The notes under the pieces are model-generated. The model worked only from the letters and a program-made list of their open reading frames with translations. It did not search any database and was not told the DNA's origin. A stretch of 64,000 nt of DNA. Origin: Podarcis cretensis. Lineage: Eukaryota. The position numbers were made by a program, and so were the translations under genes. Positions 5,689-40,810 of the stretch are shown here, in pieces. The stretch spans positions 48,608,001 to 48,672,000 of the forward strand of contig OX638151.1 of NCBI GenBank assembly GCA_951804945.1. Direction: 5' to 3'. Numbering within the stretch: the first letter of the stretch is position 1; the number at the start of each line of letters is the position of its first letter.

Positions 5689-7461
5689 TACTTCATCTTT
5701 TCACACACATTCATGTTTTCTGCCTATATTGCCAGAGTGAAGCGGGAAGCTGCCACACAGAGGTAGCTCTCACACCACCTATATATGAATTGGCCTTATA
5801 CGAAGAGACTTTCATTATGAGCAATGGGAAGCTCTATGGCTGTTCCCCATTTACCTAGCACAGAGTGTTAAATTGGCTGTTGGTACCATGGAAGATCAAG
5901 CCAACTTAAACAGGTTTGGGCTGCTGATCTTCACTGTGATACTGTGAGTTTTCCTGCTATAAGCACTGCCATCATATTTTTATTTACAAAGCTCCTTAGA
6001 TGACTAAGTACCACACTATAAAAAAATTAAAATATAAATCCACGCCCACAGGCTCACAGTCTAAAACCGACTGATAAAATAGGTAAAGTAAGGGAGTGAC
6101 TGCGGAAAAGAGGCAAGAGAAAGGTGTCTTCTGTAAACATACATCACACATCGAAAGGAAACAAAGTCTCATTGTGGTACCTACTGAATTGTTCCATCTG
6201 TCTTGCCTCTTAGTAAGTGGCCACTATATAAACCAAACTCTGAACACTTCTTTGTTCCCTTAAAAAACAGCATCAGCCTTGAATCCAAGAGTCCCACGTT
6301 AGCATGTGTTCCTTCCCTTCCCCAGTATGGAGGCTGCTCTTTCCCCCTTATTTTTACAGCTGCTCAAATTATTACATCCTATAGGTAGGAGGAGTGAGAA
6401 GGAAATGGCAGTAAATCTCATTTAATGTGTGGACACTTGAAAGCTTCGGCTGTATGTTCAAAACCTGACCTTTCCCCGGCTTGCAAAGAAACCCCGAACA
6501 GAACAGTAGCGCTAGAATTATGCCTTTTATTATTTTGTCTCTTCTAAAAGTAACAAATTCAGCAGTGCAATAAGGTGATTTCTTTCTTTCTTACGGGTTT
6601 GCTGAACCCCACGGAACAGTAGGCTGCTGCCCAAGCTCTGCATCGTGAGTGTGATGCCTCTCAGCTGTGGAGCTGCCACCAGGAATCTTGCACTCTTCCT
6701 TTTCAAGCCTCTTTCTTGCTTCTCTCCTTCTTCCTGTTTCTAGTCTGTCCTTTCAAAAAGCATCTGTCAGTTTCTATTTTGGGGAATGGCACAGCTTGTG
6801 TTTGCTCTGGGGGTCTCCAGTGAATTGCTGCATAGTGTAACTAAATCAGTTAAGTGTCTCTAAAGAGGTTAGGATAGAGCTGCCAGTTTTCCGTGCGTCG
6901 CAGTCCCAGCTTTCTCGCTATATTGAGGAGAAAACTGTAACAGGCCTCCAGCTGTTCAGGCATGCCCCAAACATTCTCCCAGTAATTATGATCTCGAAAA
7001 CAGACACTCAGAATGGTGCACTCTTAGGCAAAAGTGGACGTGAAGCCTTTTACTTCTCCTTTTTCCACAAAGTTGACATTTGTTTTGTTCCGTTTTCCTG
7101 CTTTCCTCCCTGTGTTAGCAAAGTGGAGCAAAATTGCTGTGGCCAAGGTGGATCGCTCCTTGGGGCCAATTCAGAGTACCTCTTTCCTGGATTGTCTTTC
7201 GGCTCTGTCTTCCTGAATTGCATGGATACATGGTACATTGGCCAGATGCACACATTCAACATAGGAAGCTGCCTTAAACTGAGTCAGGCCAATGGACCAT
7301 TTTGCTCAGCATTGTCTACTCTATCTGGCAGCAGTGGCTGTCCAGGGTTTCTAGCAGGGGAACTTCCCAGCCTTACCTGGTGATTCCAGGGATCACACCT
7401 GGGCCTTCCAAGCCCCCATGCTTGACTCTTGTATGCTCAGCACTGAAACCACATGGGAAGC

Positions 7462-9591
7462 TGACTTCCGGGTTAGTGCCATCGGCAATGGCGGAATTCC
7501 TCTGATCCAGAGGAACCCGCTCCGCGAAAATTGGGTCTTGCCGCCGCGGCGAAGGTGGAGACCCTTTAAAAATCCCAGGCGGAGGAAGCCTGGGAACGTG
7601 GGATTCGGCTGACACCAGGAGCGCCCCCCCCTACACGCAAGGAAACCCCTTTTTCGGGGACCTGAAGCGACGTGGGATGAGCGGTGCGGTGTTTTGAATC
7701 AACCGCTATTTTTACGGAGTGAAGCCGCACAGCCATTGCCGGAGAGCGCTGACTTTTTCCTGGGGACAATTGGACTCTAAACAAGTACCCGTGAGTAGAA
7801 CGGAAAATTGGGCTAAGAAACACTTTAATTTGGCACTCAGTGGGAAGGTCCTAAACAGGAAGTCCGCCTTCCGCTTTTGTAAATAGTCTGAAGCAAAAAT
7901 CGTGCAAGCCAAAGTCTGGAAAGTTGTACATAAAGGTTTTAAATTCCTCCTGTTTTGATCATCTAAACCCCTCTTGGAAGCAGGAGTAAAGAGGGAAAAT
8001 TTGACTGTTCAAGCCTGCAGGAGAGAGAGTAAAGAAAGATAAATTTCCACCGTCTCAAACCTGGGAACGGGGTGTCAGAGACAGAGATTTTTGGTGAAGT
8101 TCATTGACTGTGAATGGAACATCTTTTGACAGTTAGTTGAAGAAGAGAAACAAATTAATTCCAATGTTGCCTTTTGCATTTAAAAGAAACAAAAAATCTG
8201 AAAAATGAAAGTAATTTTTTTTTGTTGGATCTGCTTTTAAAAGATGGATACAAATAGAAATTGCCTCCTCTAGAGGGAGCTTGTTAAATTGTTGCTGGAG
8301 TCATTCTGGGGATTTTACAGCTGTGGAGATTAGGATCGTGGGACCAGACTGTGACCTTGAACAAAAATGTGTTTGGAAGAAGTTTTGGTGCTTGCTTTTT
8401 GCAAGACAAGCACTTTGTTGGAGCAGATGCATGAGAAGATGGATTTGATGACTGTCGCAGTCAGAAACTTTGGACAAACAGTGAATATGTATACAAAAAC
8501 CATCCAGGAGCCAACTCAGGAATCTGTTTTGATAGAGCAAGTGCAAACGCAGAAGATAATGGAGGAGGCTGCTGTTGAACTTCAAGTAACACAAATAGAG
8601 AGGCCCGAGGCCCTACAGGAGCATAAGCTATTGTTGTTGAAGGCTGAATTTGAAGTGGGCCGGGGGGGTCTGGAGTTGTGGGGCCCCTTAAGTTTGGAGG
8701 GACTTTGAAACATGCTTTTAAATATTTTCTGGACTACACTGTTGACTGTGGGGAATGGGACTATGGGGAATGGGCTGATCTGCTGAGGAGAGATGGAGAT
8801 ATTTTTGAGTTGGAACATCCCCGAGACCTACTCCTCAATGAGAAAGGAAAGAAATTAAGAAAGAGATCTACAAAAGACAAGGTAAAGTGCAAGTACAAAC
8901 AAGAAGAAGACCTGCAGAAGGGACATGGAAAAGATTTAAGAGCCTCGGATATAAGATTACCAGGTTGATGGACTAGATGGAATGGACAGTAAGGACTGAC
9001 ATAACCCGAGACCAGGAAGAAGAGACGCTGGAGGAAGATTGGAAGAAAACTTTTAAAAATTTATTTTGGGAATTAGTGTAAAATTAATGAGTATTAGGAA
9101 ATATGTTGGAATGAAAATATTTGGCTTTAGCAGAAATGTTATAAGGAATTATGTATAAATAAATATTAAGTTTTAAGTCTTAAGGTATTTTTGGGAAGAT
9201 AAGGTTAAAATAAACTAAGGTAAACTGAATGACAGAATATAGTGAAAGATGGAAAGGATTTGCTGAGTTAATTAATAGGTTAGACTGTTAAGACAAACTA
9301 TTTAAAAAAATTGAGAAGGATGGAAAGAATTTGCTGAAATAAATAACTAAACTAGAATACAAAAAGGTAGGTGTGAGGAGGTTGATGAAACAAGTTAATG
9401 AAAGATAAAGATATGGAATATTGTGGTTTTTATTGTTATTGTTGTATTGATTTTTATGTTTTTTTTCTTTTTTTCCTTTTTTAAGTATTGTTATATATGC
9501 TTTGAAAATTTTCTTTTGTTGTTGTTGCTTTCTTCTTTTTTCTTTCTCTGTAATTTTTGAAACTTCTAATAAATATCATTTTTAAAAAAAA
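7462..9591 (+). mobile_element. Internally deleted L1-type element (5' UTR + ORF1 remnant + ORF2 tip + 3' UTR/poly(A)), copy 1
   Basis: 17-bp TSD gaaaccacatgggaagc (7445-7461 / 9592-9608); starts GACTTCCGGGTT; CpG-rich 5' UTR; coiled-coil ORF1-like frames 8367-8968; AATAAA followed by an A tail. Confidence 0.82.
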
Positions 9592-11979
9592 GAAACCACA
9601 TGGGAAGCCAGGTATCTGTACTGTCTGCACCATCTAGCCATGGAAATATGAAAACCTTTGCCATGCTTCTTCGTGGTTAACATCTTACCATGTGATGGCC
9701 AAAAGAAGTGTCATGCTACTACCACAGTGACTCAGAAATCCAGGAAAGTAGAGGGCAATGGCAATCCTCACTGAGCAGCTACAACAGGGAAACCTTTTTT
9801 CAGTTCAAGGGTCTAAAAGGTTACGCCAGGGCTACATGCAAGTGGTGGGCAAGGCAAGAGGCAAAAATTGGCACAGCAATGGATACAACTCTTACCTTTG
9901 TACAGTAGGCATGCAAGTCGGATGTTTCTACAGACATTGAGCCCACACAATAAGATGTCACCTAGGTACTATAATTTAAACATGAAGCTTTAGTATATGA
10001 GACGTACAGCTTCTGACAGGCCAAATGGCATGGCTCCATACTGATAATGCCACCCCTGTTGTGTGAACCAAAGGTACTGCATTTGAAGGCCTGGGCATCT
10101 GGTTCTTGCCTGGGCCCCTTGTGAGGCACTGCTTCTCTCCCTGCTACACTCTGGCCTCTGCAGGTCACGTGAGTCACCCCAGCCATCGAGAAGAAGTGCT
10201 AGTGAGCAACTTCTAGCTGCTGGTGGGCACCTTCAGGGTCCCTGGACTCTCTTCGTAGGGTTATCTTTAAACTGGACTGGGACTGGACACTGAAATAGAG
10301 GGCTGCCCTCTGCAAAGTGAGGCATGCGGCTGCCCTTTTCCTCCCCAGATAACCACAACTGTCTCCCATATTCTGTTGACTTAAATATCTGAGTTTTTAT
10401 CTGACATAGGACTAGATTTTTCTTTCTTCTCATCTATTTGGAGTGGCCTAAAATGAGCCTTGGGGAACAAGAATTACATTTTGGCTAGTGAAATAAAAAC
10501 GGGATGCACGGTATCGCCACAAGAAAACAAACATACTGATAAAATGATGTGATTACATACATGCTGAACCTTTTCTGATCGGCCTTCACAGGCATTTAAA
10601 GAGGAAGAGGAAGCAGTGAAGTCATTTTAACAATTTAGCAGAGTCTTTCAGAATTAGTTAGCTCCCTGCTGAAGAGACTCTCACAATTTTCACATGCTCC
10701 TCTGGGCAAGCTCCAGAGGACCTGCACTCGGTTTGTGAGGAATAAGGCCACTCAGGAAGAAATTCAATTACTGAGCTAATTATCACCCTGGCTGAGTGGT
10801 AAGAACAAAATTTTAAGTAAGAAGCCACTGGAGAAAAGCTCCCATTGCCCAGTAGTCTCAAAAGTTCATTTTTAAAAGAGATCCTAGCTGACAGCTGAAA
10901 GCCCAAGGGTGAATGTGCAGCTGAGTCTGGGATACAGGATATTAGAATTTTAATACTGTACAGATTCTTGGAGCTTTTATCAAGTTGCAGCAATTCAGCT
11001 GCCATAATTGTGTGGAGATTTTAAAGTCCAAAATAGACTTTGCGGATGTCCCTTGGCTAAATTACTTCTGATTTCCACAACTTTAGGAGTGAAATAGTTT
11101 CTCTGTACTTTGGTTTTGCAACAGCTGTGTCATTTTAAACAGTTTTGAGAAGGCTGGGCTTGTGATGCTTAGTTAAAGAGGCAGATAAGAGCAACGTTCT
11201 AGGGTTATCTCATGTGTTATTCTAAAACTTTACAAAGCAGTTGTGTGAAACTCTTTGGGCCAACACAGATGAATCTGCCAGGAGGAAAAACATGCTGTTT
11301 CTAATGGGTTTATGGTGGTATCTCTTTTGTTTCAGGAAAGCTACCCTATATATATTGGATTTCCAATGATGTGGGAAGCAAGACTATCAAATCTTTATAG
11401 ACAGAAACTTCAGATTGGCCATACCAGCATTTTAACCATCTCCTCTATATATGTGTGTGTAAAAGTTTATAAAGTAGTACAGAGCTCTGGATAATCCAGT
11501 ACTGTTTTTTTGGCAGCACATTCAAAATGCCCATGTCTTTTTCCTTCATGAATTGATGTGTCTTTATACAGAGGGTGTTTTAAAAGATGGTTTGTTTGGA
11601 GCAGATAGATATTTATTGTTTGAATGTGGAAAGCTGGGAATACATTTATTTCAAACTTACCCACATTAAGTTATGAGGAATATTTTGAAGATGCAGGTGT
11701 CAATAGCATAATTGTGGTCAGTATGAGATCTAGTGTTTTTGATGGTTCATTGCTTAAAATAGCTCGCTTTCTGGAACTGCCATCTGAAAGAACAAGGAAT
11801 TCAGTCAGCACAGAAAGCCAGCACTGTTGGTTGATGTTAGAAGAATTTGGGTTGTGTGCAAATGAAACACTGCACAATAATATTTTATGTGGACAAATTA
11901 AGCCAGATCAGGAATCAATCACTTGTACAGAATAGAAATAGAAGACAGGGATAAACTGTAGGTATCTGTTTATTTCCAG

Positions 11980-13234: not shown

Positions 13235-13386
13235 NNNNNNNNNNNNNNNNNNNNNNNNNNNNNNNNNNNNNNNNNNNNNNNNNNNNNNNNNNNNNNNNNN
13301 NNNNNNNNNNNNNNNNNNNNNNNNNNNNNNNNNNNNNNNNNNNNNNNNNNNNNNNNNNNNNNNNNNNNNNNNNNNNNNNNNNNNNN
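13235..13386. other. Assembly gap (152 N)
   Basis: Run of N in a PCNX2 intron. Confidence 1.
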
Positions 13387-22886: not shown

Positions 22887-23305
22887 GTACATTTCGGTCT
22901 AACGCTGCTGATTTAATGGGGGTGGGACGGGTTCTCGCCTTTACTTGAATTCTTGTTAGGAACAGATGTTCCAAATCAAAACAAGGAAGTTTATTGGAGC
23001 GCAAGCCATCAGCAATACGTAGTGGTAAACATGGTACTCGTTTTCCAGTGAGATAAGAGGCTCTTGAGCTGACTCCAAAGAGCTCCTTCACTGAATTGGT
23101 TGTAAGAACTGGGGAGCAAAATGGAGGAGAAACATGATGGTAACACTTGAGAAAGCAGAAAGTGTTGGGAATAGAGAGAGCGTATGTATCTTGTTAGCTA
23201 CTGCGTATGACCTGCTGTGGAACTGATCTAGTGCACCTTACACTGATATGTTATGAAATTAAAGGACTTTAGTCACAAAGACAACAGTGGTACTTTTTGT
23301 GCATA

Positions 23306-24017
23306 CAGTGGTGCCCCGCAAGACGAACGCCTCGCAAGACGGAAAACCCACTAGACGAAAGGGTTTTCCGTTTTGGAGGCGCTTCGCAAAACGAATTTCC
23401 CTATGGGCTTCCTTCACAAGACGAAAGCCCATAGGGAAATCTCCGGGACAGCGGGGAAGCACAGCGCGTCTTTCCCACTGTCCTCGGACCTCCTCCGAAG
23501 GCTGCCGGTGGGGCGGAGAGACCTGCTCCGGCCGCCAGCCTTGGGATGGCTGCTCCGAAGACTGGCGGTGGGGCGGAGAGATCTGCTCCGGCCGCCAGCC
23601 TTGGGATGGCTGCTCCGAAGGCTGGCGGTGGGGCGGAGAGACCTTCTCCCCGCGCCAGCCTTCGGATGGCTGTCCTGAAGACTTGCGGTGGGAGGAGGGT
23701 TTTCCTTCCCACCGCCAACTTTCAGAATGCTGTTCTGAATGTTGGCGTGGGGAGGAAAAACCCTCCTCCCACCGCAAGCCCCGGGAACAGAGGAGAAGCG
23801 CTGCGCGCCTTCCCCTCTGTTCCCGTACCTGTCCTGAAGCCTTGCGGTGGGGAGAAAAGCCCTTCTCCGCACCGCCAGCCTGGCAAGCGGTCTCCATAGG
23901 AACGCATTAATTGATTTTCAATGCAATCCTATGGGAAACCGTGCTTCGCAAGACGAAAAACTCGCAAGAAGAAAAAACTTGCGGAACGAATTAATTTCGT
24001 CTTGCGAGGCACCACTG
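23306..24017. mobile_element. Tigger/pogo-like MITE with 60-bp GC-rich minisatellite
   Basis: TA|CAGTGGTGCCCCGCAAGACGAA ... TTCGTCTTGCGAGGCACCACTG|TA; ~3 tandem 60-bp units from ~23490, then degenerate units. Confidence 0.87.
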
Positions 24018-24083
24018 TATTTGCATTAAAGCACAATGGGTTGTTGCACTGGCAATGTCCCCCCCCCCTTTGGGATTAACTGA

Positions 24084-24209
<126 letters not shown>

Positions 24210-25964
24210 TAATTTTATTCCAATGCCATGGAAATTATGGATGTAATAGTTTGCTGGTTTTTCATTTGCCATTAAATTCTGCAGGGGTAGTGGAAGAAAG
24301 GAAAAACACAAGGGATAGGTGTAAAATCATTTGTAAAAAAAAAATGGTTACAGTTACAAATGGCAGCATTTGTTACTTAGTTGTCCCTAATGAAATACAA
24401 AACTTAATGATTATCTTGAGAGTTAATTTCACCAGTGAAACCAAAATAGAATTGGAAGAAGATTATGTACTTTTTGCTTTGGTGATTTACAGTGTAAATA
24501 TTGCATGTTGACCTGAAAAGTACATCCCACAGTGCTCAATGGAGCTTTCCCCCTAATAATAAGTGTGTAGCACTAAAAGATTTTCCCCTGTTGTGCAGTT
24601 GAGACCATCCCTCACTTCTGTTGTTCCAAGAAGACGTGGTTCGCAATATGGTGGTGGCATTTTTAATGAAAAATAGATAACTGGTTAAGTCATACTTTGC
24701 ACTCACCAACTGATCTAGTGTGCATTTGAAACACCCAAGTTTCCATCCACTATAAAAGAGAGAAAAGTGGCGGGCATTTTATACACCTCCCTTTTAATGT
24801 TTAATGTTTCTGCACAGGGGGGACAGGTTCCTTTAATTTAAACCTCTCTTCAAGAAACATGTTGAAGTAGCAGAAGCTCTTGGCTGCCATGGGTTAGTTC
24901 ACACATTTCCTTGACATGATCTGGGGTGCAATGGAACATGACGTGCACAGTGCAATGATATTCAGAACCACCACACTTTCCCTGAAGCTGAATTCTTCAA
25001 GAGAAGTTGTGTGCTTTAAATTTGGGGCAACTGTGGATGTGACATGGAAGGAAATGCTGCTGAATTTTCCCTCTTGGCTGTTGGGGAAGAGGAGGGGGAG
25101 CACATGATGAGTCAAAGGTTGACTAGGGCTTATTTGTACTCATGCACATTAATTAAAGCCCAGTCTAAGCTGCCAAGTATTCCTTTGTAGCCCTGCCCTA
25201 CATGCATGGCACTAGGTGGCCGTGCCTTCCCCACATGGCCTTCTGAGCCAAATAGGGAGGCTTGGCAGGCCAAATTTAGCCTATGGGCCAGAGGTTCCCC
25301 ATCCCTGCAATAAGCCATGGTTTCTCAGGAGATGTGGATGCAGCCAATACAATAATGCCATTTTGATGACTCTGCCATGCCTATGCTTCACATGTGTGTG
25401 GATGGGAGCTGGGAACTGCACATAGTAGAGGATCTCATCTGTCCCTTATCACGTTGGCATCAGGGCTGTGTATAAACCCATGACTCACTGCTAGGCCGTA
25501 TGCCAAGAAGAGAATGGTGTTATTATGCACAGTAAAGTTATGTAGGATTTAGCAGACAACAAGTAAGACCGGGCCTTTTATGTAGCTTGCTTCATGTTGA
25601 TGCTACATTCATTTAAAAGCCATTACCGTTTACAAGGCAAAATGCATATTTAGAGAGCAACGCTGAGCTGTATGCTACTACATACATAGTGAAGTTTACA
25701 TTATATATGTACGCTGGCAATTTGCATTCATTTACACATGAATTACCTTTAATCAATTAATGGGAGATTTTAATGGTAAACCATGAAGGTAAATATTCTC
25801 ATGCAATGTATGTAAATAACATTTCTGTTACCTGTCACTGTGAACGTCAGCAGAAGCCAAACATTATCTTTCAAATTATGCAGTACAGTTGCTAATTAAG
25901 AAGCACAGCATAGCTATAGAAAGGATGCATATCCTTCTAGCTAGACAGCCTCTTATATGACCCA

Positions 25965-25971
25965 GCTATTA

Positions 25972-26008
<37 letters not shown>

Positions 26009-26135
26009 TATTAATTATACCCCGCCCATCTGGCTAGGCTTCCCCAGCCACTCTGGGCGGCTTCCAACAAAAGTTAAAATACAGTAATCCATCAAACATT
26101 AAAAGCTGCCCTAAACAGGGATGCCTTCAGATGTC
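25965..26135 (-). mobile_element. LINE (L2-like) 3' end with (ATT)n microsatellite tail
   Basis: (ATT)n run at ~25967-26010 followed by taccccgcccatctggct...ctgggcggcttccaac. Confidence 0.55.
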
Positions 26136-28845
26136 TAGTTCCATTATTTTTATGGCTCAATTAATGGAGGCAGTTGTGATCAATGGTAATGGGGGGACGA
26201 CCAATGAAAAAGCACATGTTTTCAAGAGGATCTGTTTTACTGGATCCAATTTCTGTGTCCTATTCTCTCTCTCTTTTTTTTTACTCATTTGTCACCCCGT
26301 TTTCTTCCCATTGACCGTTTCATTTCCTTCGCCTACTTTCCCAGATTGCCCCTCTTTCCATCTTACCTCTCTGTCGCTCCTCTTTCAGTTCAGTTGCTCA
26401 GATGCCAATCTGAGGAACTCCAAAAAGGAAGTGGGAAGGAGTTCTGCTCTTCCTACTTCAGCTCTGTGCAGCTCTTAAAAGGGGGAAAGGTAGCCATCCT
26501 CACCACTTTATGATAAAGGGGGCAGTCGGGGGGTGGGCTAAGCTCAGAGTCTTTCTGGGCACCGTTGCCCCATGGGCATCACATTGGAGACCGCAACTTA
26601 AATTGGTGCAGAATGCAGTGTCTGGAACGCTTGCAGAGCTCGTGGTTTGCTCATATTACATCTACTCTTGGCCAATTACATTGGCTGCCTGTTTTCCCCA
26701 GGCCCAGTTTAAGGCATTAAACTTAAATGGTTTGAGACCAGGTTACCTGAAGGACCACCTGAACTCTGGTCCAGAGGTGAGAGCTTTCAGGTTAGTTAGT
26801 ATAAGGGACAGGCCCTTTCCTGTGGCGGCAGCTCCATATCTGTGAAATACCCCTCTGAAGGGAAATGTATATGGCTTTTTTTTTTGTTCACCTTTTATTT
26901 TATTCCAGTCTGTATTTAGTTAATTTTTAGTGCTGGGGTTTTATAATGGTTTTGTTTGCTACTGCTATTTTTAATGTTATTTTTATTTTATTGTACTTTA
27001 ATCATTTGGATTTTTCGTGTATTGTGAAAGTTACATGATTATGTTGTAAAGCACCTTGTGAGGATAAATATCCTGAGAAGAAGATTAAAAACCCATTAAA
27101 TAAAATAAAATAAATTGGCCAACAGGCCAGAAGAAGAAGAAGGGCCCTGAGGGAGGTTTTGAGATTAAGAAAGCTAGGGAAATTTCAATATAACCTTATT
27201 AAAGTCTTCCCAAGAATGCATGTTAAACTGAGGAAATGCAATAGATTTGAACTAATAGATCTGCCATACATCGAAAAGAGAAATTTAGACAGTTTCGAGT
27301 AACAGCTTTGGTACAGTCATAAAATTTGCATATTTTATTTCATCTCTGCTTTCATAACCTGATCTCATCATATGGCACTGAAAGACATATAAAATATTTA
27401 AAATAATGGAGCTGTGTAATTGTCTCCTACTATTTTGCTCCTAATGTGAATCTACTTTGCTGTTAAGAAGCTCAAGTTGCTGAACTGGCTGTTTGCATTT
27501 AGGCAGACTGAGCCCTCAATGCATTTCTATAATAAGCTGAATTATTCCCGGTAATTGTGAATGTGGGTCCAATAAAAGCTCTCACCCAGAGCTCTATTGT
27601 TGCAGCCAATGTCTTGTGCCACTGTTACCATAGCTGTTAATGTTATTAGTGAGATGATATTAAAATGCACGTTCCTTGGTAATAAATCCAAATCCCACTT
27701 TATAAAAACCCAGCAAATAAGCTGTTGCCTTCTCTGCGATCAGTAGCACATTTTCTTCTGGTCCTAGTACATCTGCAGATGGGCACAATATTTTAAGGGT
27801 CTTTGGATGCCCATGTTTCCACCACCACTCAGAACAATTGCTGGCTCATCCTCCTCCCCAAGCTCAGTGGTGGCATCACCGGCGGGGAAAATAGAAACAT
27901 TCTATGTTCAAATCAGAAGCCAGGAAGGCTTTCATAATTCTGGGAATGTTCCTGGAAAATTGGGGCGCTTACAGGGTATGCACAGTGCTGTCATGTGACT
28001 TGCATAGGAAAACAGGAAGCAGGCTTATACTGAGTCAGACAATTGGTCCCTCTAGGTTAGTATTATCTGCTCTGACTGGCTGGTTTCTGTCAGGAGCTTT
28101 TTCAGCCCTTCCTGGAGACACCTGGGACCTGCAGGCAAAGCAAATGTTTTGCCCCTGAACTATGGCCCTTCCTGACTTCCACAAACATTAAAGTTGTGTG
28201 AACACTCTGTTTGTTACTATGTGCTTATGTGCATTTGACACTCAAAAGCTTTGCCTGTGCCCAATATATGTGAGCTTTTCCATTCATGGTCAGTGCTGAA
28301 ATAGAGCAGTCTTTCAATAAGCTTTCCTCCTGCTGCTGTTTGTCAGTTTTAATAGTATGCTAGCAGAAACAAAAAATAGCAGCATTGTTTTGAAGCTCTG
28401 TAAGAAGAACAGAGAGTTTAAGAAAGTGCCCAGTCAAACCTCAGTTTCAATACAGCACTTCTACTTTTGGTCTATACACATTTTTTTCTACTCCTGAATA
28501 TAATTAAAAATGCTCTGCTATGTAGGCAGTTCACATTTTATTTAAATTGTATTTTTTTAAAAAAAAAGAAAGAAAGAGGAATGGTAATATATATATAAAA
28601 AAGAACTTCTAACATCCTCTCCAAGGACGCAATCAAAAATACGCTCTTGTAAAAATGGTAAAACCATGTCAGGTAGACGAAGCAACATCCTGTGGGGTTG
28701 AAACCAATGCTCCAAGGTCTAGTTCTGGTTTCCTGAAAAGCATAACCTAGTTTCCTGGAAAACATGCTTCAAGGCAACTGCATAAGTAGTTTTTACTTTT
28801 TTTAAGAATAATAAACTCATGCAAACATCTGTTCTTTGAGTCTGA

Positions 28846-29000
28846 GGGGGATTGTAGCTCAGCGGAAGAGCTCGCACTTTGCATAGGGAAGGTCCCAGCT
28901 TCAGTCTCTGGCATTTGCAATTATACAGATCGGGTAGAGGGGAACGGGACAGAAACTTGGGAGAATGGCCAGCGAGAGCAGGCAATGTTGGGGGTAGATT
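28846..29000 (+). mobile_element. Degenerate tRNA-headed SINE (tRNA-Cys-like)
   Basis: ggggattgtagctcagcggaagagc..ctttgcat..gaaggtcccagcttcagtc A/B-box remnants. Related - strand copies occur near 7260-7440 and 28000-28170. Confidence 0.5.
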
Positions 29001-29020
29001 GGCAAGGCGTCGGCACTAAA

Positions 29021-29165
29021 GCCAGAGATGTAGCTCAGCTGGTCGAGAGTGAGACTCTTAATCTCAGGGTTGGGGGGTTCAAGCCCCACATTGGGCAAAC
29101 AATTCCTGCATTTCAGGGGGGTTGGACTCAGTGGCACTTGTGGCCCCTTCCAACTCTATGGTTTG
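29021..29165 (+). mobile_element. tRNA-Lys(CTT)-derived SINE with CR1-like 3' tail
   Basis: tagctcag...gagactcttaatctcaggg...ggttcaagccccacattgggc closely follows tRNA-Lys-CTT; followed by ggttggact...cccttccaactctatg (CR1 3'-end-like). Confidence 0.75.
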
Positions 29166-29884
29166 AATACAAGGCAGCCATTTGTGAAGGGAAGGGTCTC
29201 CTCTGCTGCTATCAGGTCCTTAGAAGGTTGGCATTTTCTCACATATATAGGTCCCAGGCATTCAGGACTTTATATGTCAACGTAAGAACCTTAGATTGAG
29301 CCTGGTAACATCAGTGCAAATCCTGAAATATGGGTGCCAGTGGAGACTGGTCCGCTTGGACAAAAGGAGCACAGCACTGCCCCACCAGTCTCATTCTGCC
29401 CTCAGCCAGCCACCACTTGCCTTCCTGCCTTCTTACATCCAGTCCCGGGGGTGGTACTACCTGGGGGTGGTACCAGCTGTCAGCTTCTACTTCCTTAGTC
29501 TACATGCTGCTATTATAGAACTCAGCAGGGAAGAGGAAGAATGGGACAAGATGAGAATTAGCAGTGGTTCTGACTTCACTTAATATTGGTCTCCTTGCCC
29601 TACACTCTACCAGTTCCAATGGGCACCAGCCACCACTACCAGTCAGCAATCTAGTGACAGTATATGGCACTAGCTGCAGGTTTTTGGACCACCTTCAAGG
29701 GCAGCCCTACAGAGAGGACATTGCAGTAGTAGAATTAGGAAGTTACCACAGCATGCAAAACTGGCCTGGCTATCCTTGTGCAGGAAATGCCCTAGGTGGT
29801 GAACCAACTGGGCCACGAAAAAGATAAGCCCTGGCCACAGAAGCTGGTCCTCCAGTGACAGTGTTGTTGGGTGAAAGAGATTAA

Positions 29885-30145
<261 letters not shown>

Positions 30146-30727
30146 TAGCTGTAAAAAGGAGGCCCACAATTCTCTCAAATGGATCAATAAAACACAACAG
30201 TGCAGTTGTGGTTTTCTTAAACATTTTTTCTGTAGAACTAAAATGATTTCTCCTGTACTTCTTGAGCCTTCTGCCTACATGCAAACTCACCAGTTACTTT
30301 ACTTGTATAGTGAAATGGTGAGAATGTGTTATTAAAGCCAGTTCATTTTAGAGTGTGAATTGAGTTCAAGGTAGACTTGGATTACTGCCTATTAGTTTGC
30401 CACAGTTTGAGTCTCTGACTCAGAATAGATGTTCAGCCCATAAACTAATCAGATTTCCTTCTAAAGCTTTCAAGCGAAACTTTTCAGATCCATTTAAATC
30501 CTCAGGAGACTTCAATGGGTGTGGTTTCTGCTTTTTTCTGTGTGGTGGTAGCTGCTCTGAACTCCCTTTCCTCTAATCATGTTAATCTCCAATGAAGTCT
30601 TTTCTGACCTGAAGTAAACAGTTTTCTGGCAAATCTCATGGGGAGCAAGATTGCATACGCTGCTGCCAACAACCTCCATCTTCTTCACAGAACTTTTTGA
30701 TCATAGCAATGCCTTTTCATTTAATAA

Positions 30728-31030
<303 letters not shown>

Positions 31031-31821
31031 TAAATGAATAATGATTGCCTAAAAAGATGTCCTCTGTCATGGACACACCAATTAGGAAGGTCGACAAGAA
31101 TCATATTCTCTCTTTAAAAAAGAAAAAGAAAAGAAAATACATAGGAAATTCCCGACTGCTCAGATACAACTAAGTGCAGGGCCACCAAGAGACTTAACCA
31201 TATAGCGATACAAACCCACATGATCTGCACCTCTGGAGATTACTCCCTGTGCTTCAATAGAAAGCTAAGTATCTTGTGTTTCTTTCCTTCTTTATTTTAT
31301 TATTATAATAAGAAACAATGCAGGGGGGAAAAGATAAAACACAGCTTTAAAAAAAGAAAATTAACAATGTATCATCACACAAATAACAATATATGATTAA
31401 CATACTGTTGAAAGTCTACCTGTGATCATTTCATTTTTCCTGAATATTTTATTTATCACATTCTTGATAGTGCATGTGGTTGAAGTTTTTCTTGCATTCT
31501 GTTGCACCAATGCTTTACAGACATCAAGAAACAATCTGTTGATTTGTCTACCTTCCCTTGCCCTTCACTCTATGAGTAAATGTTACCATATACAAAGAGT
31601 TATAACTTTTCCCCAGTGAAGATGGGTGAGTATATGTACTGCAGTTAACAAATGGATTACCATATTATTACCGACACATATTATTTGTTCCGGTATGTAT
31701 CCTGTTGAGCCTTGTAGTTGTTAAATACCATCAAAAAACAAATGCATAAAGCTTTCCTTTAAAATTTGCGCTTAAGGTGTTTTGGGGAGCATGTTGGCAT
31801 ATCCATATGTTTGCTTTTTAG

Positions 31822-32097
<276 letters not shown>

Positions 32098-32485
32098 TAA
32101 GCTGGTGACACCGCAGCAGATGTTCAGTCACATCTGGAAATGAGTTTGTGTGTGTGCGTGTTCTTTTGTAGGGGGAGCAGTGCTCTCAAAATATATAAAT
32201 TGCTTGGGGACGTACAGCTTTTTCCTCTTAACGCCCTTCACTCCAGCCCAAGGTTTGTGTACACCTGAGTTGGGTCAGAAGAGAAAGTGTGCTGAGTGGC
32301 CAGCCTGCCCTCCCTTTAAACAAGTGTGAAGGCTCTGTGTGCGGAACTTCTTGTTCTGTTAAAACAAAATAGAGCATCTCCTTGTTGTATTTGCTGCTTT
32401 CCTGGAGCTCTTCCTTTCAGGAATCAAAGCACAGTGCAATCCACAGGGCCTTGTGTTTACTCTGCTGATAGTATTTATTTGCCAC

Positions 32486-32837
32486 CAAGTGGCACTGTGG
32501 GTTAAACCACAGAGCCTAGGACTTGCCGATCAGAAGGTCAGCGGTTCGAATCCCCGCGACGGGGTGAGCTCCCATTGCTCGGTCCCTGTTCCTGCCAATG
32601 TAGCAGTTCGAAAGCACGTCAAAGTGCAAGTAGATAAATAGGTACCGCTCCAGCAGGAAGGTAAACGGCGTTTCCGTGCGCTGCTCTGATTTGCCAGAAG
32701 CGGCTTAGTCATGCTGGCCACATGACCCGGAAGCTGTACGCCGGCTCCCTCAGCCAATAAAGCGAGATGATCGCCGCAACCCCAGAGTTGGTCATGACTG
32801 GACCTAATGGTCAGGGGGTACCTTTACCTTTACCTTT
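32486..32837 (+). mobile_element. Sauria SINE
   Basis: gtggcactgtgggttaaacc head, B box and (ACCTTT)3 tail; no clear TSD. Confidence 0.88.
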
Positions 32838-33344
32838 AAAGTTAACAGAAAAAGTAAAAAAAGTGGTACACACATATAAATGTTTGAATGCTAATGAAAC
32901 CATAAAATCTTACACAACATAAAACTCACAAACTGAAAGTAACAACCAGAAAACAGAAGTTGACAGCAGTACAGTGCCAAACTACAGAACTTACAAAAAG
33001 ATGTGGGTGGGGAAATAAAAAGTGCCTTCAGCTGGTGCCCCAAAGGCCAATGTCATCTGTGGAAGGCATTCTATTGCTGGGCTGCCACCACAGAAAGGGC
33101 CCTGTTTGACATCTGTTCCTCTGCTTCAGTGATTCTGGTCTTGAGTCATTGTTGCCTGCTGAATTCCTTGCATTTCCTATATTCAGGTAGCTGCTAACTG
33201 AGGGAGGCTTACTGTGACAAAGTGTCCTTCATGAACAATGGAAGACTTTCCCCCTCCTCACTGCTATGAGTCCTTTTTTATAGCCAGCTGTGGGTGCGCC
33301 TGACAATTTTGGGGTCCCTTTTTGTTCCCTTGTATTTTAAACAG

Positions 33345-33523
33345 GATGCGGAAAGACTGCCATCCAAGCCACAACAGTGGAGGAAACCTTGAGGAAGGAG
33401 CGAGTAGAAATGGATCTTCCAGCAGCAATCCAGTTAATAATTCAAGTCAGAGCAGCAGTGCCCAGCATACGAGGAACAGCACACCCCAGCTGCAGCCTTC
33501 TTTAAAAATTGCTCAGTTTTCAG
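33345..33523 (+). CDS. PCNX2: PCNX2 coding exon; MRKDCHPSHNSGGNLEEG...KIAQFS
   Basis: ttttaaacag|G acceptor and G|gtattt donor; 179 nt; phase 2 in and phase 1 out, consistent with neighbouring exons. Confidence 0.88.
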
Positions 33524-36500
33524 GTATTTACACTATTCATTTATTTTACTTTTTGCTTTACAATATCTATCAGCAGGAGTGCACCAAAGGTAAGATTCGG
33601 TTCAGGACACTCTTGGGTGCTTCAGAAAGTGGGCCAGTTCAACTTGGACTGCTTTCAGGAATGACCTGCTTCTCCCTGGATCCGAATCGGAACCTCATTT
33701 TGGAAAATCCGCAGTCTTTTATATCTCCTTATTGACTTACACAGGTGTCAGGTGTGGAGGTGGTTGCTCGTGAGTAACCAGGGAGGGTTCTGACCTGTCT
33801 TTTACAGGTTTTATTTGTGCAAACTATTTACAGTGCAGAACCCCAAAGTTCATGTCTGTCTCAGTCACTTGCAGATTCTGGGAGTGCCCCTTTCCAGTTT
33901 CTCCCCCAGCATAAGAACTTAGACACCCCAAATCTCCGCCTCCCCTCCTTACGTTTCACCCCTCTGCACAAGCAGGGAAATGGAAGCAGCATGGCTGCCT
34001 CCTGGCCGGCTGAGCTAGGTGAGGCACTTGGGCTCCCTGTCGCATCTTCGAGCCCTCCCGTCACCCGGCTACCCACCTCCCCCTCGGCTCCACTGGAGGT
34101 GTGGCTTTCTCCACTGCCAGACGAGGACCTGCTTCTCAGAATCACCGGAGGCTCTCTGTATCCCTCTGCGTCCCTCTCCCATCCTGATGGCAGTGCCCTG
34201 ACAGCAAGCAAATGAACAAATGGCTATAACTTTTTGACCAAACTGGGTGGCATTGGCTGGGGTACTAGTCATTTCTGAGCAGTTGAAGATGGCTAAAGAT
34301 CAGACAAATAGGTGCAGAAGTTTCTATGATACTTTCTATGAATATCTCTTTATGTGCCCTTGCAAGGATGAAATGGTCCAGTAGGAGATATTGGATTTGT
34401 TGAACCTTCAAGTTAGCTGCATTTGCTATATTTAGGTATAGATTATACAGCTGCTTGCTGAAACTTCAAGTCCTTGCCATTAGTAGGCAAGGCTGGAAAT
34501 GATCTTCCCGTAAATGAAAACTGCAAGATTAGAATTGCTGCTGCGTCTTCTAACTTGGCCTAACTGAACACATATGACTGTTTATTCTTGTAAACTAGTG
34601 CTGGAATAATTGGGAAGGCAGGCTTAATTGCAATATAATAATCATGAGATGCCCAAGTGGGTTTAAATGTTTCTTAATTTAATATTTAATTATATTGGCA
34701 TCCGCAAAATTCGGTTATAGTTGTTTTTTATGACCTGAGTAGAACCAGGCACAATGGGAGTGGGTTAGACGCCTCAAAAAAGTGTCTTAGGTGTATAGGG
34801 GAGCCTTTGTTTTCTAAATGTTTGCAGATATTTGGTTATTTATGTGCAAATATGGGTGGTCTACTGTACAGCACTGCAACCATTTAATTAAAAGACAAAT
34901 ATGCAATATTTCTGGACAGTGGTCAGCTTAGCTGCTGAAATTGTGAACAGATGTTTGGCCACACTTGATTCTGAACATCAGGGTACCAGATTCCCTTGTT
35001 TCACTTCCTAGCTGTAATTTTTTATATAAAGGTATTAACATTAAAATAATCAACAGACCCAGAAACAGAATTTAATCCAGACTCTGAGCTTGAAGAAGCG
35101 AATGTTCAAAATAAGGGTATTGTTGCAGCAGAAGTTTGCTGTGAAGGCCTGCATCTAATTACAGTTTAAAGTGGAAGATTCCCTCCAGTTCTCTTCCAAA
35201 CTGCAGCGCTATCTGAGGATGCATGTTCAAAGGTGTGCCAGATGATTAATAGCGTTGCGCCTCTTTAATAGGAACCACAGGGCTTAGACTCGGGGGCCAC
35301 CACAACCTGTCAGGCCAGCTCTGAAAATAGGCTGTTTGTTATTTTAAGCAGAAAAAGTAGAAATGCTTACTGGTGCATTGCTAATAGGTGAGCAAGATGC
35401 ACATCCAGTTCCGTATTGCTGATTTTAATGATTTTTTTAAAAAAATGTTTTAAATAGTTTGTCTTTACTGATAATTTTACTGTTTTATTATTTTTTGTAA
35501 GCTGCTTTGAGGGTTTTTTTTACAATCACTTAGTATATAAATTTTATGAGTAATGTATATACATTTACATCCCCCCCAAAAGTGGCTAGGCTACTCATTA
35601 AACAGGAACAGCGTTAACAGTATATGTTCATTACATTCCATCAGCATCCCACGAGGTTAAGTTCCCTGTTCCACTAGAGAATAGTGGGTTGGTTTTTATT
35701 TACCAGGAGATGACCTCACATTTGCGATGACAGCATGTAGCTTGTTTTGCTACTAGTCATGTCGAAAGCCCTAAAGGGGGTTGATTCTTTCTCAGCTTAA
35801 GCATATAACCATGACCATTGGTTCAATTCCAGTTAGTGTGAATGATTTATAGATTTTGCTATTACTGGAATATTTTAATTTTAATAACACAGAATCGCCA
35901 AGTGGCCTGCATTACTTGCATATTATTATATTGCAATGTGAACCAGTCTCTCCTTTTGACTGCTGCTACTTTTTACTATCCAAGAACTCCTTCTCATGAC
36001 AGCAGGGAAGATTTCCAATTGCACCTGAGCCTCTGAAGTCATTTGCTCCAACCCAGTCCTTTGAGTTTCTATACTAGTAATGTTAAATCAGGATGCTTCA
36101 GCAGGTGCCCTTGTGCTGGTATTGCAAGCTGATCCAGGTACTCTGATGCAATTGTATATCTCAGTGTCCTGAATTAGAGCTGCATCACGAGAGCATCTCA
36201 CACAAACCCTTTGCATGGCACACAGTTAAGGACCGGCTGTGTCTGCGCTGCATCGTCAGAGCAACTCCAGGTGACTCAGAGTTAGCGGTGCTCTTTTGTT
36301 AGGAGTTTCACCATCATCATCATTTTATTTGAATACCGCCTTTCCATAGTTGAAACTGTGCTCAAGGTGGCTTATGACATGACAAGATTTACATAATTAC
36401 AAACATGACAGAAGTCATAAACAATAAAGAAAACATCAAAAAGTACACAACCAAACGGAAACAATTTCCACGTAAATCATAAGATCTAAAACTAAAGATG

Positions 36501-37005
36501 CAACAATAATATCAATAAACAATACTCCAGCCCAAGAATTTGTTCAACAGCTTCAGCTTTTGTAGCTGGAGTCAGTCAGCATTCCACTCTCCCAGGCCAG
36601 GTGGGAAAGGGTCAGCAAGGCAGGGTGCAGATCTTCCAGGGCTCACAGCCAAGATGGTCTCATTTAAAACAACACAGATTAAAATTAAAAACAATTTAAA
36701 AGCAGCTGCAGTCCTTGTGAAGTCTGTCAAGCCCTGCTCTAAGCCAGGTGGAAAGAGGCAAGGACAGGGTTCTTTGGGCCCTCAGCAGGCAGTCCTCCTA
36801 GGTAGCAGCAGCAGTCCTTAAGAGCCTGAGTTTGCTGTGCACAAGGTATCTGTGGAGCTGTTGCTTTGTTGGGTTTGTTTGCTTCCCTTCCTCCAAAAAG
36901 CTCCAAGCAGCAACTGTCAGGTTTGTCAACTTTTATTCCCACACAACAGCCCTGTAAAATAGGTTAAGCAGACAGACAGACACACACACACACCCTACCT
37001 GAACT

Positions 37006-37152
37006 CAGTGGCGTAGCGTGGGGGGTGCAGGGGGGGCCGGCCGCACCGGGCGCAACATCTGGGGGTTAGGGTTAGGGGGCGCAAATCCATGGGTTAGGGG
37101 GCGCAAATTACTTGCCTTGCCCCGGGTGCTGACAACCCAAGCTACGCCGCTG
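37006..37152. mobile_element. hAT (Tip100-like) MITE containing TTAGGG units, inserted in a MIR-like SINE
   Basis: TIR cagtggcgtagc / gctacgccgctg; 8-bp TSD cctgaact. Confidence 0.85.
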
Positions 37153-38873
37153 CCTGAACTTAAAGGCTGAGTCAGTGTGAACCCAAGTCTCACCCATTAA
37201 AGTCCAGCACTTGTGTTCCTGCACTAGACTGGTTTTCAGTGTCCCTCCAAGCCCCTATGCACATATACCTAGAGGATGGGGGCTTCAAGAGGTGCATAGG
37301 ATTGAAAATTTATTTCTTGCAGGATTGCTGAGCAAAACTTGCTGTTCTTGTGCAGAGAAGCAAAAGATGATCCATAAGAGTTCCTAGGAACCTAATGACT
37401 ATTACATGCAACAGGGATAAGGAAATGTTGCACTCCAGATTCAGTTAGACTCCAGTTCCCATCAGCCCCAGTCAGCACAGCTAACAGTGGGGGCAGAGGC
37501 AATTCTAGGGTGGTGCGACTGGTGTGGCAGCACCGGGTGCTGCTCTGCAGAGGGTGCAACAGAAATGCTGTAGAGCAGAGCACAAGAGAATTTTAGCGTT
37601 ACGCAGGGCACCACTGAAATTAGAGGGCCCAAAGTCTGCCACTGGTGGGGGATAATCGGAATTATGGTTCAGCAACATGTTGGTTCCCTGTCCGTGTCTT
37701 GCAAATCTGCTAGTCCATGGTAATGGCTGTGACATCAAAAGATTTGGGCGGCAAACATTTTAATTTATTTGAATAACAGAGCCAATGTTCAGTGTTGCTT
37801 TCAAAACACAGGTATAAAAGCAGCATGGGGAAGCCACAAATGGCACATGTAAGATCCCTGCTGTTAATGTTACAGAGACATTTGCTCAAGCAGATGTTCT
37901 GGGCATTCAGGACTTGTTTGTTTCTTGTCTCAACAACTCATATGGAAGAGGCGAAAAGAAACCTAGATATTACTTCCACTGTTAAATTACTCCTGCTGCT
38001 CAGTTAACCTCTTCCCAATTCAGCGAGTACAGCCAAGGCACTCCAAGGGGAAATCTTGGCTTCTCCACAGTTGTAAGGACAATTAATGTGAAGAGCAGGG
38101 GGCGGCGGTTCAAATAGGTCAACTCAGTACTGCTTTCTGATATCAACAATAAAGATTCACCACATTCTCAGGTCTCTCTGTTCAGAGATCCAGCGTCATT
38201 CTGCTCAACCTTCTCTTGTTTCATGGTCTTATGCCTATAGTCATTGTATTGGTAATGTTTGCACTGGTGCTTTCTGTCCACTTTTGGTGACCCTTCCCTG
38301 CTTCCACTCTGCTCCCAATACTTTCCTCTTGCTCTCCTCTCATTCCATGTTTGACACTGATCAAGACAGCAGATGGGCAATCGCATCTAAAATCTGTAAG
38401 GTAGAGTTATGCTTGCACAAGCCCACTTCCGAGGTAAGTCCCAACCCATTCAGAGCCAAGGGATTGTGTGTTGGATTGTGACCATTGCTTATAAGACTGT
38501 TCCTGCGCCAAAGCTGGAATCCTAAAGATACTTGGAGACTTGGAAGTGAGTCTCATTGCAATCTGTGGGATTTACTTTCAATAAAGCACAGTTAAGAACT
38601 GCTGTAAAAGTCTTGGATATTTTGCCATGGAATTGCATTGGAATGGATGCATAGTTTGGATGATGTCACCGACTAGTTGGCCAGATTGCCAGTAGCACTA
38701 TAATTTTCTGTATCCCTAAAGCTCTCTGGGATTTTCAGGATAAAAAACTGTTAATTGTTATCCTTTGTACTTCCTACTGTGCACTAATTGGATCGAGGCG
38801 GTACGTTTTGAAGGCTATTGCTGGAGCTGTCATTTCCCAAAATAATCCTTTCTTCTCTCCCTCTCTCTCACAG

Positions 38874-39334
38874 GCAGAAGAAAGTTCAGGAGCCAGTCTG
38901 TTCAGACACATGCTGCCTTAAACCAAAGGCCCCCTCGTTCGAGTCATTCTGGTCCCATCGTAGACAGCCACCAGCCATTCATCCAGACTTCCACTTCTGC
39001 TCATGAAATTGCCCAAGGGCTTTCTGGCAGCCAGCTGTCCTTCCACAATTCAGCAACTTCCGTCTTCTCCCAGACTCCTGCCATCCCTACCCTGGGCCAG
39101 CTCACTGTGCAGGAGAGAGCTGGCGCGATGCTCCGCTCAAGCCTGGCTTCTTCCACCAGTTCAACGCTCAGCCTTTTATTTGGCAAGAGAAGCTTTTCGA
39201 GCGCTTTGGTTATTTCAGGGCTCTCGGCTGCCGATGGAGGAAACACCACAGACACCCAGTCGTCCAGCAGTGTTAACATCGCAATGGGACCGTCTGCCAG
39301 AGCAGCAAGCCGTACTATGCAAGAGACCACGCGG
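38874..39334 (+). CDS. PCNX2: PCNX2 penultimate coding exon; RRKFRSQSVQ...SSTSSTLSLLFGKRSFSSALVISGLSAADGGN...ETTR
   Basis: Strong pyrimidine tract plus cacag| acceptor and CGG|gtaaga donor; 461 nt, open; matches the recalled PCNX2-specific Ser-rich tail. Confidence 0.92.
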
Positions 39335-40189
39335 GTAAGAAAAGGCTACCAGAAATGCCACTGGCGGATATTTTTCTATTGACTCATTCACCCCAGTGCC
39401 CCACTTAGTCCACGCAAGCCTCCTCCTCGCTATGTGGAGTGTGAAAGCAATAAGGATTTTGATAGAGAGCTGTTGAGCAACTCCCTCTCTGTTGGGAACA
39501 GAGCACTACTCGTATTAATATCACATCATCTGAGATTACCAGATGGAGACAAAGTAGTGGAGTATTCTAAAAGGATAATGGAGGTCTCAGAGCTGTCATG
39601 TCAAATAAGGCATGGGATGCTTTCCTCAGGAATAGATTGGCATCCTAATACTACAAGTCTGCTGTAAATTTGGCAAGCTGGCTGGCACTGTGACATTCTC
39701 GCTCCGCTTTTCCAGTCAGAAGCAACCCAAAACCCGTTTGCTAAATATGGTATTAGGACTTAATAAGCTAGTGATTTAAGGGATCCTTGCCAATACTGCC
39801 TCTTTCTCTGCTTTGTCTCGGCAAAAGCCGTATCAAATACTGTACTGCAACAGGCCTTCCCTCAGTGATTGCTCTACTGTGGCTGAGGTAAAATCCCAGC
39901 CCAGAATTTACATCTTGGCCAGGATCTAAACATGAGCTTATCTAAGATGCTTCCAGGGGTGCACACGGATGCAACTGATTTTCCATTCTTCCTCCCACCC
40001 TCTGTGTGCTCCTGTGGATGGACTCTGACATCTCCAAGAACAGCTTTTTTTATTAAATTATTTATTAATTCCAATTATTTATATCCCATTCTTTAGCTCC
40101 CAGAGTGGCTTACAAAGCAATGCAACACAGAGGCATTTGGGGGGACGGGACCAAGGTGAAAACACAGACCTAGACATCCTTGGTGCCTA

Positions 40190-40810
40190 TTATATATTTA
40201 TATACTGTCCTATACCTGGAGGTCTCAGGGCAGTTCACAAAAAAGATATCTCTCCCCCCCCTCTCTCTCTATATATAAAACAATAACCCAATAATACCTC
40301 CCCCCAAAAAAAGAGCCACATTTTAAAAGGGTATAGGATGTTGATCAGGTCAGCCAAAGGCCTGGTTAAAAAGGAACATTTTTGCCTGATGCCTAAAGCT
40401 GTATAATGAAGGCTCCAGGCAAACATCCCTGGGGAGAGCATTCCACAGATGGGGAGCCACTGCAGAGAAGGCCCTGTTCTTGTGTGGCCACCTTCCAGAC
40501 CTCTCGAGGAGAAGGCACACAAAGGAGGGCCTCAGGAGTTGATCTCAAGGTCCAGGTAGGTTCATATGGAAAGAGGTGGCTCTTGAGGTATTGCGGTCCT
40601 GAGCATAGCTGTCAATGTTTCCCTTTTTTAAAGGGAAATTCCCTTAGTCTGAATAGGATTCCTCACAAGAAAATGGAAAAGTTGACAGCTATGTTCCTGA
40701 GCTGTTTAAGGCTTTATAGATCAAAACCAGCACTTTGAATTGGGCCTGGAAACTAATTGGTAGCTAGTGCAGTCAGACCAGGATCAGTGTAATATGCTCA
40801 AACTGCCCAT
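40190..40810 (-). mobile_element. L2-like LINE 3' fragment
   Basis: Typical reverse L2 3' motifs (gggagagcattccacagatggggagccac...gagaaggccc; accagcactttgaattgggcc). Similar decayed pieces lie at ~26560-27115 and ~45640-46260. Confidence 0.55.

Follow-up and report, generated by a model that had tools for sequence, protein, structure and literature searches.

The present analysis concerns two copies of an element derived from the long interspersed element (LINE) L1, designated copy A and copy B, which lie in a 64-kb stretch of contig OX638151.1 (the window); the protein matches point to Podarcis as the host genus. Both copies lack nearly all of the second L1 open reading frame (ORF2). Half-L1-like elements without ORF2 are a known kind and, to our knowledge, have been described mainly in mammals so far. 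The literature on the best comparable form, HAL1, includes Smit 1999 and Bao and Jurka 2010, as cited in PMC5753468. In that paper, HAL1 is presented as a non-autonomous L1 derivative which encodes only ORF1p and which arose several times in mammals. The lizard copies resemble HAL1, as outlined there, in that a 5′ portion containing ORF1 is kept together with the 3′ end, the enzyme domains of ORF2 are gone, the element is apparently multi-copy and it is presumably mobilised by L1 in trans; the repeated independent origins of HAL1 form a pattern that another independent origin would fit. The differences from that account lie in the lacertid host, the independent origin and the coding state, since HAL1 encodes ORF1p, whereas both ORF1s here are broken and one sublineage is devoid of the RRM. 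In addition, the deletion studied here removes the C-terminal tail of ORF1p (...LGAVGG) and leaves about 40 ORF2 codons. No paper on lizard elements of this kind was found in a literature search, the scope of which did not extend to Repbase and Dfam.

Three other systems invite comparison. SpIREs, the spliced integrated retrotransposed L1 elements of humans, resemble the lizard copies in having an exact internal gap between complete 5′ and 3′ ends and in being flanked by target-site duplications (TSDs), and some of them need proteins in trans (PMC5860796). The SpIRE splices are located within the 5′ untranslated region (UTR) or run from the 5′ UTR into ORF1, and these elements were called evolutionary dead ends (PMC5860796); in the lizard copies, by contrast, the gap extends from ORF1 to the end of ORF2, the 5′ UTR is whole and the form has apparently been propagated and diversified. 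Autonomous L1s of Podarcis and Anolis agree with the copies in the type of ORF1p, in the C-terminus of ORF2p and in having a poly(A) end and long TSDs, but the copies possess no endonuclease, reverse transcriptase (RT) or Cys-rich domain and measure 2.1 kb instead of about 6 kb. Many divergent L1 lineages are reported to coexist in lizards and to be active together (PMC5381506, PMC3787681), a pattern with which the present lineages agree. Finally, the sublineage of copy A is reminiscent of SVA and other non-coding passengers transcribed by RNA polymerase II (Pol II), and of processed pseudogenes, in that it would depend on a polyadenylated Pol II RNA and on ORF2p supplied in trans, with no coding capacity of its own. 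Unlike SVA, the lizard element is wholly L1-derived and still has the promoter region and the 3′ UTR of L1.

Copies A and B are probably members of a non-autonomous L1 deletion family that would have had a single origin, be transcribed from its own 5′ UTR and be copied in trans by the proteins of autonomous L1s. The structure of the copies and their junction, the state of ORF1, and the age and abundance of the element are considered below in turn.

Structure of the two copies and their common junction

Both copies bear the hallmarks of L1 retroposition, namely perfect TSDs of 17 bp (copy A) and 21 bp (copy B), an AATAAA signal and an A tail. These long TSDs, the common start, the CpG-rich 5′ UTR and the polyadenylated end had all been proposed in the initial annotation, made from the sequence alone, and each was found in place, with the refinements that the A tails are short and that copy A has one extra T. 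This T, at 7462, precedes the 12-mer GACTTCCGGGTT, which is found in the window only at 7463 and 50500 (0.14 occurrences expected by chance). The ratio of observed to expected CpG is 0.93 at positions 7462–7911 of copy A versus 0.31 for the whole window. The estimated length of 2.1–2.2 kb, exclusive of a nested miniature inverted-repeat transposable element (MITE), also proved correct. The features of the two copies are as follows.

7462–9591, + strand: copy A, whole element, 2130 bp
7445–7461, + strand: copy A, 5′ TSD, 17 bp, GAAACCACATGGGAAGC, perfect match to 9592–9608
7462–8366, + strand: copy A, 5′ UTR, beginning (T)GACTTCCGGGTT; the first 450 nt or so are CpG-island-like
8367–8968, + strand: copy A, ORF1 remnant, from tblastn, alignments and the list of open reading frames; stop at 8966–8968
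8959–8975, + strand: copy A, junction of ORF1 and the ORF2 tail, ACCAGGTTGATGGACTA; break within about 8960–8965
8965–9081, + strand: copy A, ORF2 remnant, about the last 40 L1 ORF2 codons; tblastn match at 8959–9048
9082–9591, + strand: copy A, 3′ UTR, with AATAAA at 9568–9573 and an A8 tail at 9584–9591
9592–9608, + strand: copy A, 3′ TSD, 17 bp, GAAACCACATGGGAAGC
50500–53039, + strand: copy B, whole element, 2540 bp (2205 bp once the nested MITE and its TA duplication are subtracted)
50479–50499, + strand: copy B, 5′ TSD, 21 bp, GCAATTTTAATCTGAAATCTT, perfect match to 53040–53060
50500–51411, + strand: copy B, 5′ UTR; observed/expected CpG 0.79 in the first 450 nt (window 0.31)
51412–52507, + strand: copy B, ORF1 remnant, from tblastn (P0004, P0003 and others), reading frames and alignment
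52498–52514, + strand: copy B, junction of ORF1 and the ORF2 tail, the 17-mer ACCAGGTTGATGGACTA as in copy A
52504–52605, + strand: copy B, ORF2 remnant, the last 33–43 or so L1 ORF2 codons (LMDYMELAE...EEDWKKFKDYL, stop)
52606–53039, + strand: copy B, 3′ UTR, with AATAAA at 53016–53021 and the tail AAAATAAAA
53040–53060, + strand: copy B, 3′ TSD, 21 bp, GCAATTTTAATCTGAAATCTT
52100–52432, + strand: MITE nested in the ORF1 of copy B, 333 bp, with a TA duplication and imperfect CAGTGGTG... terminal inverted repeats

The 17-mer ACCAGGTTGATGGACTA is present in the window exactly twice, at 8959 and 52498 (0.01 occurrences expected by chance), so the deletion junction is identical in two independently inserted copies, as had been suggested. 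The ORF2 side was identified with a query set of 45 Podarcis and Anolis RT proteins, gathered by means of the ORF2 portion of P0003, a chimeric gene model. The protein P0035 (1246 aa) contains Exo_endo_phos and RVT_1 domains, and its residues 4–1206 align to human L1 ORF2p with an E-value of 5e-174. Residues from about 1203 to 1245 of Podarcis ORF2p of 1245 aa (...QLMDYMELAEMTGRIRD..EEDWKKFKEYL...) match positions 52498–52626 of copy B (tblastn, 65–77% identity, E about 1e-14), and the same C-terminus is recognised at 8959–9048 of copy A with an identity of up to 60% (tblastn, E 2e-4). The ORF2-like C-terminus previously noticed after the ORF1 stop therefore corresponds to the last 43 or so residues of Podarcis L1 ORF2p. 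These residues were the only ones matched when the 45 ORF2p were compared with both copies by tblastn, and no endonuclease, RT or Cys-domain signal was obtained in either copy, in agreement with the original statement that these enzymes are missing. An ORF2 match reaching upstream of the junction, to 52411, was rejected, as it enters the MITE and lies on DNA that aligns colinearly with ORF1p (75% identity).

On the ORF1 side, intact ORF1p relatives run about 45 residues past ...EDLQK.LGKELRA.DRRSP, to ...EEEQ.LGAVGGK. Most Podarcis ORF1p end in ...EE(E/Q)xLGA(V/T)GG after a variable linker, and both copies lose this motif at the junction. In the elements, the ORF1 stop follows directly after RRSPG or IRLPG (in copy B, ...RRSPG and then TGA at 52505–52507), and the next codons, in the ORF2 frame, read LMDY.... 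Since the junction joins ORF1 ...RRSP to the last 43 or so residues of ORF2p, the event removed the tail of ORF1, any spacer and some 1200 codons of ORF2. Homology to L1 was thus detected on both sides of the junction, and the concern raised in the initial annotation, that neither ORF might be related to L1, did not materialise. The ORF2 tail of copy A has an in-frame TAG at 8974–8976 and its natural stop at 9079–9081. An exact scan of metagenome contigs for the junction pattern gave no hits.

The two elements are not close copies of each other, with identities ranging only from 65 to 83%. By segment, the identity is 76% in the 5′ UTR, about 65% in ORF1 and about 83% from the ORF1 end to the 3′ end. 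The cis parts (the 5′ UTR on the one hand, and the ORF1 end, ORF2 tail and 3′ UTR on the other) are consequently better kept than ORF1, and this fits selection on the cis-acting parts of the source elements. A conserved CAGGAAGT is located about 395 nt into both copies, and the start motif holds CCGGAAGT on the opposite strand; we presume that CCGGAAGT and CAGGAAGT resemble ETS-type sites and regard them as a lead only. Self-comparison of the 64-kb window revealed no third copy. An Rfam search of the window yielded no RNA family, and the tandem repeats within the element are trivial only.

Identity and decay of ORF1

The RRM-like piece of copy B (51630–51941) matched intact Podarcis proteins of 344–362 aa in an exhaustive HMMER search, with E-values down to 4.5e-16, and the source names of the ORF1p-like matches were Podarcis muralis and P. 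lilfordi. With tblastn, Podarcis ORF1p-like proteins were aligned to 51412–52097 of copy B (E to 1e-46) and to two parts of copy A, 8403–8654 (coiled-coil) and 8720–8965 (C-terminal domain, CTD), with E-values from 1e-5 to 1e-10. Homology begins at the Met of 51412 in copy B and of 8367 in copy A, and no ORF1p N-terminal residues were found upstream of it. An AlphaFold model of the intact relative P0004, built from 7 sequences with a mean pLDDT of 65, has a long helix followed by a beta-alpha-beta-beta-alpha-beta unit and a small alpha/beta domain. In a Foldseek comparison of this model with the PDB, the top 10 hits were all human L1 ORF1p (the trimer entries 2YKQ, 2YKP and 2YKO, and 2LDY; E 2e-6 to 2e-5), and the RRM entry 2W7A was superimposed with a TM of 0.70 and an rmsd of 3.1. 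One relative bears the UniRef name ‘L1 transposable element RRM domain-containing’. Because of the homology to Podarcis ORF1p and the match of the predicted P0004 fold to human L1 ORF1p, the ORF1-like region of both copies can be assigned to L1 ORF1, though the Pfam profile misses this branch. Sequence-level searches of the PDB were less informative: a profile of intact ORF1p matched coiled-coil proteins only, and the RRM piece of copy B gave no match there or in a word-index protein search, probably owing to the length window.

Neither ORF1 is intact. Copy A keeps the coiled-coil part (8367–8654) and the CTD part (8720–8965), and most of the RRM is gone; according to the alignment, the RRM was lost in two blocks, one of about 90 nt following 8654 and one of about 69 nt following 8713, and a frameshift lies at the G run 8655–8661. 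Copy B has four lesions: the frame shifts near 51650, about 18 codons of the RRM are missing in frame, a stop occupies 51942–51944 and the MITE is inserted. With their frameshifts, stops and deletions, both copies lack the intact ORF1p that characterises HAL1. Copies A and B are non-coding rather than ‘ORF1-only’, because ORF1 is broken in both and, in the lineage of copy A, was broken before insertion. The original label overstates the coding state.

The differences between the ORF1 remnants of copies A and B show a slight, non-significant excess at third positions in the coiled-coil part (36 versus 22 and 22) and none in the CTD. The motif FPQGLSF does not vary among the 26 other aligned ORF1p, whereas the two copies have in common two replacements in it, G->D and S->L. 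In the ORF1 tree they are sisters (support 84/90) and adjoin the ORF1 part of P0003 (82/96), to which the ORF1 of copy B is 77% identical over 129 columns. The branch lengths are very unequal, with 2.3 changes per site for copy A and 0.17 for copy B. The shared derived changes and the sister grouping would fit one origin of the deletion.

Several Podarcis gene models contain similar sequences. In P0002/P0071, P0008, P0003 and P0033, the fusion partner of L1 ORF1p is a TRIM39-like RING/B-box protein, a vomeronasal type-2 receptor or pieces of ORF2. These fused models could be annotation chimeras or exonised L1 parts.

Insertion age, abundance and weighing of explanations

Logan contigs were compared, at 85% likeness, with a 3.2-kb stretch that includes copy A, in runs X1, X3 and X6 (organisms A, B and C) and in X15. 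In each of X3 and X6, a contig links 7444 directly to 9592; 2147 bases are skipped, and 17 letters are shared at the joint. The skipped bases equal copy A plus one TSD, and the joining contigs are at single-copy depth. In X1, the filled site is represented by a contig of 1736 nt that takes in the last 26 nt of the element and continues into the 3′ flank. The divergence between flanks and window amounts to about 0.5% in X1 and to about 1.5% in X3 and X6. An exact empty site in two other organisms, with flanks only about 1.5% different, marks copy A as a recent insertion. The two RRM deletion points of copy A are crossed without gaps by contigs of X1, X3 and X6; since contigs of three runs span both points, the RRM-less form is multi-copy and older than copy A itself. 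A contig of X15 matches the element beginning exactly at 7462, after 257 unrelated letters, which points to a further copy, identical in its 5′ end, in a fourth organism.

Repetition is high in all three genomes. The contig pieces on the stretch numbered 6640, 6608 and 3062 in the three runs. In X1, the summed contig depth is about 80 on the flanks, 165,000–397,000 on the 5′ UTR, 25,000–43,000 on the ORF1 part and 170,000–500,000 from the ORF1 end through the 3′ UTR. Summed depth on the element is roughly 300–6000 times that of the flanks, the order of magnitude of which says hundreds to thousands of related pieces; it is not a copy number and includes autonomous L1s sharing the 5′ UTR, the ORF1 end and the 3′ end.

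This last circumstance is one of several that weigh against a trans-mobilised deletion family of single origin. No copy outside the window was seen across the junction among the contig pieces listed, which stop short of it. The placement of copy A in the ORF1 tree is uncertain owing to its very long branch. As regards transcription, X15 is RNA only by a guess, and one of its contigs enters the element from an unrelated flank. That an autonomous partner L1 has the same two UTRs is a presumption. Lastly, the Pfam Transposase_22 profile, against which the initial annotation had advised a check, matched none of the seven ORF pieces and none of the intact relatives P0004, P0007, P0009 and P0063. 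This profile for L1 ORF1p apparently does not recognise the lizard branch, of which the fold and context are still those of L1; profile-based annotation of transposable elements will under-call ORF1 in lizard genomes.

Other accounts of the two copies must satisfy the same observations. That a segmental duplication, or two retrocopies of an ORF1-derived host gene, gave rise to the same architecture at two loci 43 kb apart is hardly credible and was rejected. The TSDs differ, as already pointed out in the argument against duplication made from the sequence, the flanks differ too and the identity is only 65–83%; the ORF2 C-terminal remnant, the broken frames and the repetition of the element hundreds to thousands of times likewise speak against such origins. 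Recurrent production deserves more attention. Here, different full-length L1 RNAs would be spliced, or subject to template jumping, at the same two sites again and again, one at the end of ORF1 and the other some 40 codons short of the ORF2 end, and each product would be inserted once as a dead end, like SpIREs. In humans, L1 transcripts are known to undergo retrotransposition after splicing (PMC5860796), the junction ...CCAG|GTTG... resembles an exon–exon joint, and divergence of the observed degree between copies A and B (65–83%) is what different L1 families would be expected to give. However, copy A is recent yet RRM-less, with a branch of 2.3 changes per site, which means that its source was not a working L1, and its RRM-less structure is common to other contigs. 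The derived ORF1 changes that copies A and B share, absent from 26 other aligned ORF1p, and their sister position in the tree also speak against separate events. Moreover, to judge from the protein sequences, a CAG|TTG acceptor (the Q-L codons of most ORF2p) would leave no extra G at the junction. Recurrent production is accordingly considered improbable.

A true HAL1-type family, in which master elements still encode a working, C-terminally shortened ORF1p and copies A and B are decayed offspring, is a more serious contender, although still rather unlikely. The ORF1 of copy B is near an intact-looking ORF1, as its identity to P0003 and its short branch indicate, and the third-position excess in the coiled-coil part points in the same direction; this excess, however, does not reach significance and does not extend to the CTD. 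Of the 24 ORF1p cluster representatives found, none has its C-terminus at ...RRSPG, and the sublineage of copy A had lost its RRM before insertion, in a form that is itself multi-copy. A non-autonomous deletion family of single origin is retained as the preferred explanation. A stronger version of it can be put forward only tentatively, as a conceivable rather than a probable outcome: a long-lived L1-derived lineage, in which the coding capacity of both ORFs was lost, the Pol II promoter and L1 3′ end were kept and sublineages diverged by about 20–35%, may still be inserting in living populations of wall lizards.

Other features of the window and of the contigs may be mentioned here. The nested MITE is no part of the L1-derivative family; relatives of it, 85–90% identical, are located on the other strand at 23296–24020, a region with long ORFs on both strands that have no Pfam match. 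The 3′ UTR of copy A contains an internal duplication of about 71 nt (9236–9275 / 9307–9346) without a counterpart in copy B, and several contigs of three runs have a joint 9266->9361, where this duplication is replaced by about 24 other letters. Beside copy A, the contig depth at 7221–7327 and 9789–10002 is about 25–500 times that of the flank and reflects other high-copy repeats, and 107 loose contig ends fall at 7258. An RT fragment at 59580–60332 (− strand), 23–36% identical to Podarcis L1 ORF2p and with a weak RVT_1 match, is probably a remnant of another LINE clade. Positions 13235–13386 consist of 152 N (an assembly gap or masked stretch).

Proposed mobilisation in trans and its significance

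The family may have begun with one ancestral event, in which the last 45 or so ORF1 codons, any spacer and ORF2 codons 1 to about 1202 were lost. Left behind would be a unit of about 2.1 kb, in which the L1 5′ UTR and the larger part of ORF1 are followed by some 40 codons of ORF2 and then by the 3′ UTR and the poly(A) signal. Its CpG-rich 5′ UTR is a putative internal Pol II promoter, from which transcripts would begin at GACTTCCGG, and the RNA would be polyadenylated after AATAAA. Mobilisation in trans is suggested by the absence of endonuclease and RT together with recent insertion: ORF2p, and probably ORF1p, would be supplied by autonomous L1s, and target-primed reverse transcription at new sites would yield the A tail and the TSDs of 17–21 bp. 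The lineage would subsequently have split into sublineages that are 65–83% identical and have been active recently. As the RRM was lost before copy A was inserted, at least that sublineage would spread as a non-coding RNA.

Non-autonomous derivatives that carry the promoter and 3′ end of a LINE reveal how strict the preference of LINE proteins for their own RNA is, and a sublineage without the RNA-binding domain of ORF1 is a natural test of the need for ORF1p in cis. For annotators, it matters that 2.1-kb units and ORF1 pieces already lie inside predicted lizard ‘genes’ (TRIM39-like, vomeronasal-receptor-like). The insertion of copy A, filled in one organism and empty in two, could serve as a population marker. 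A successful, still mobile ORF2-less family in lizards would extend the HAL1 phenomenon beyond mammals. Should the long-lived non-coding lineage prove real, lizard L1 proteins would accept L1-like RNAs in trans far more easily than might be expected from the strong cis preference of mammalian L1, and selection would act on the UTRs of the passenger and not on its ORF.

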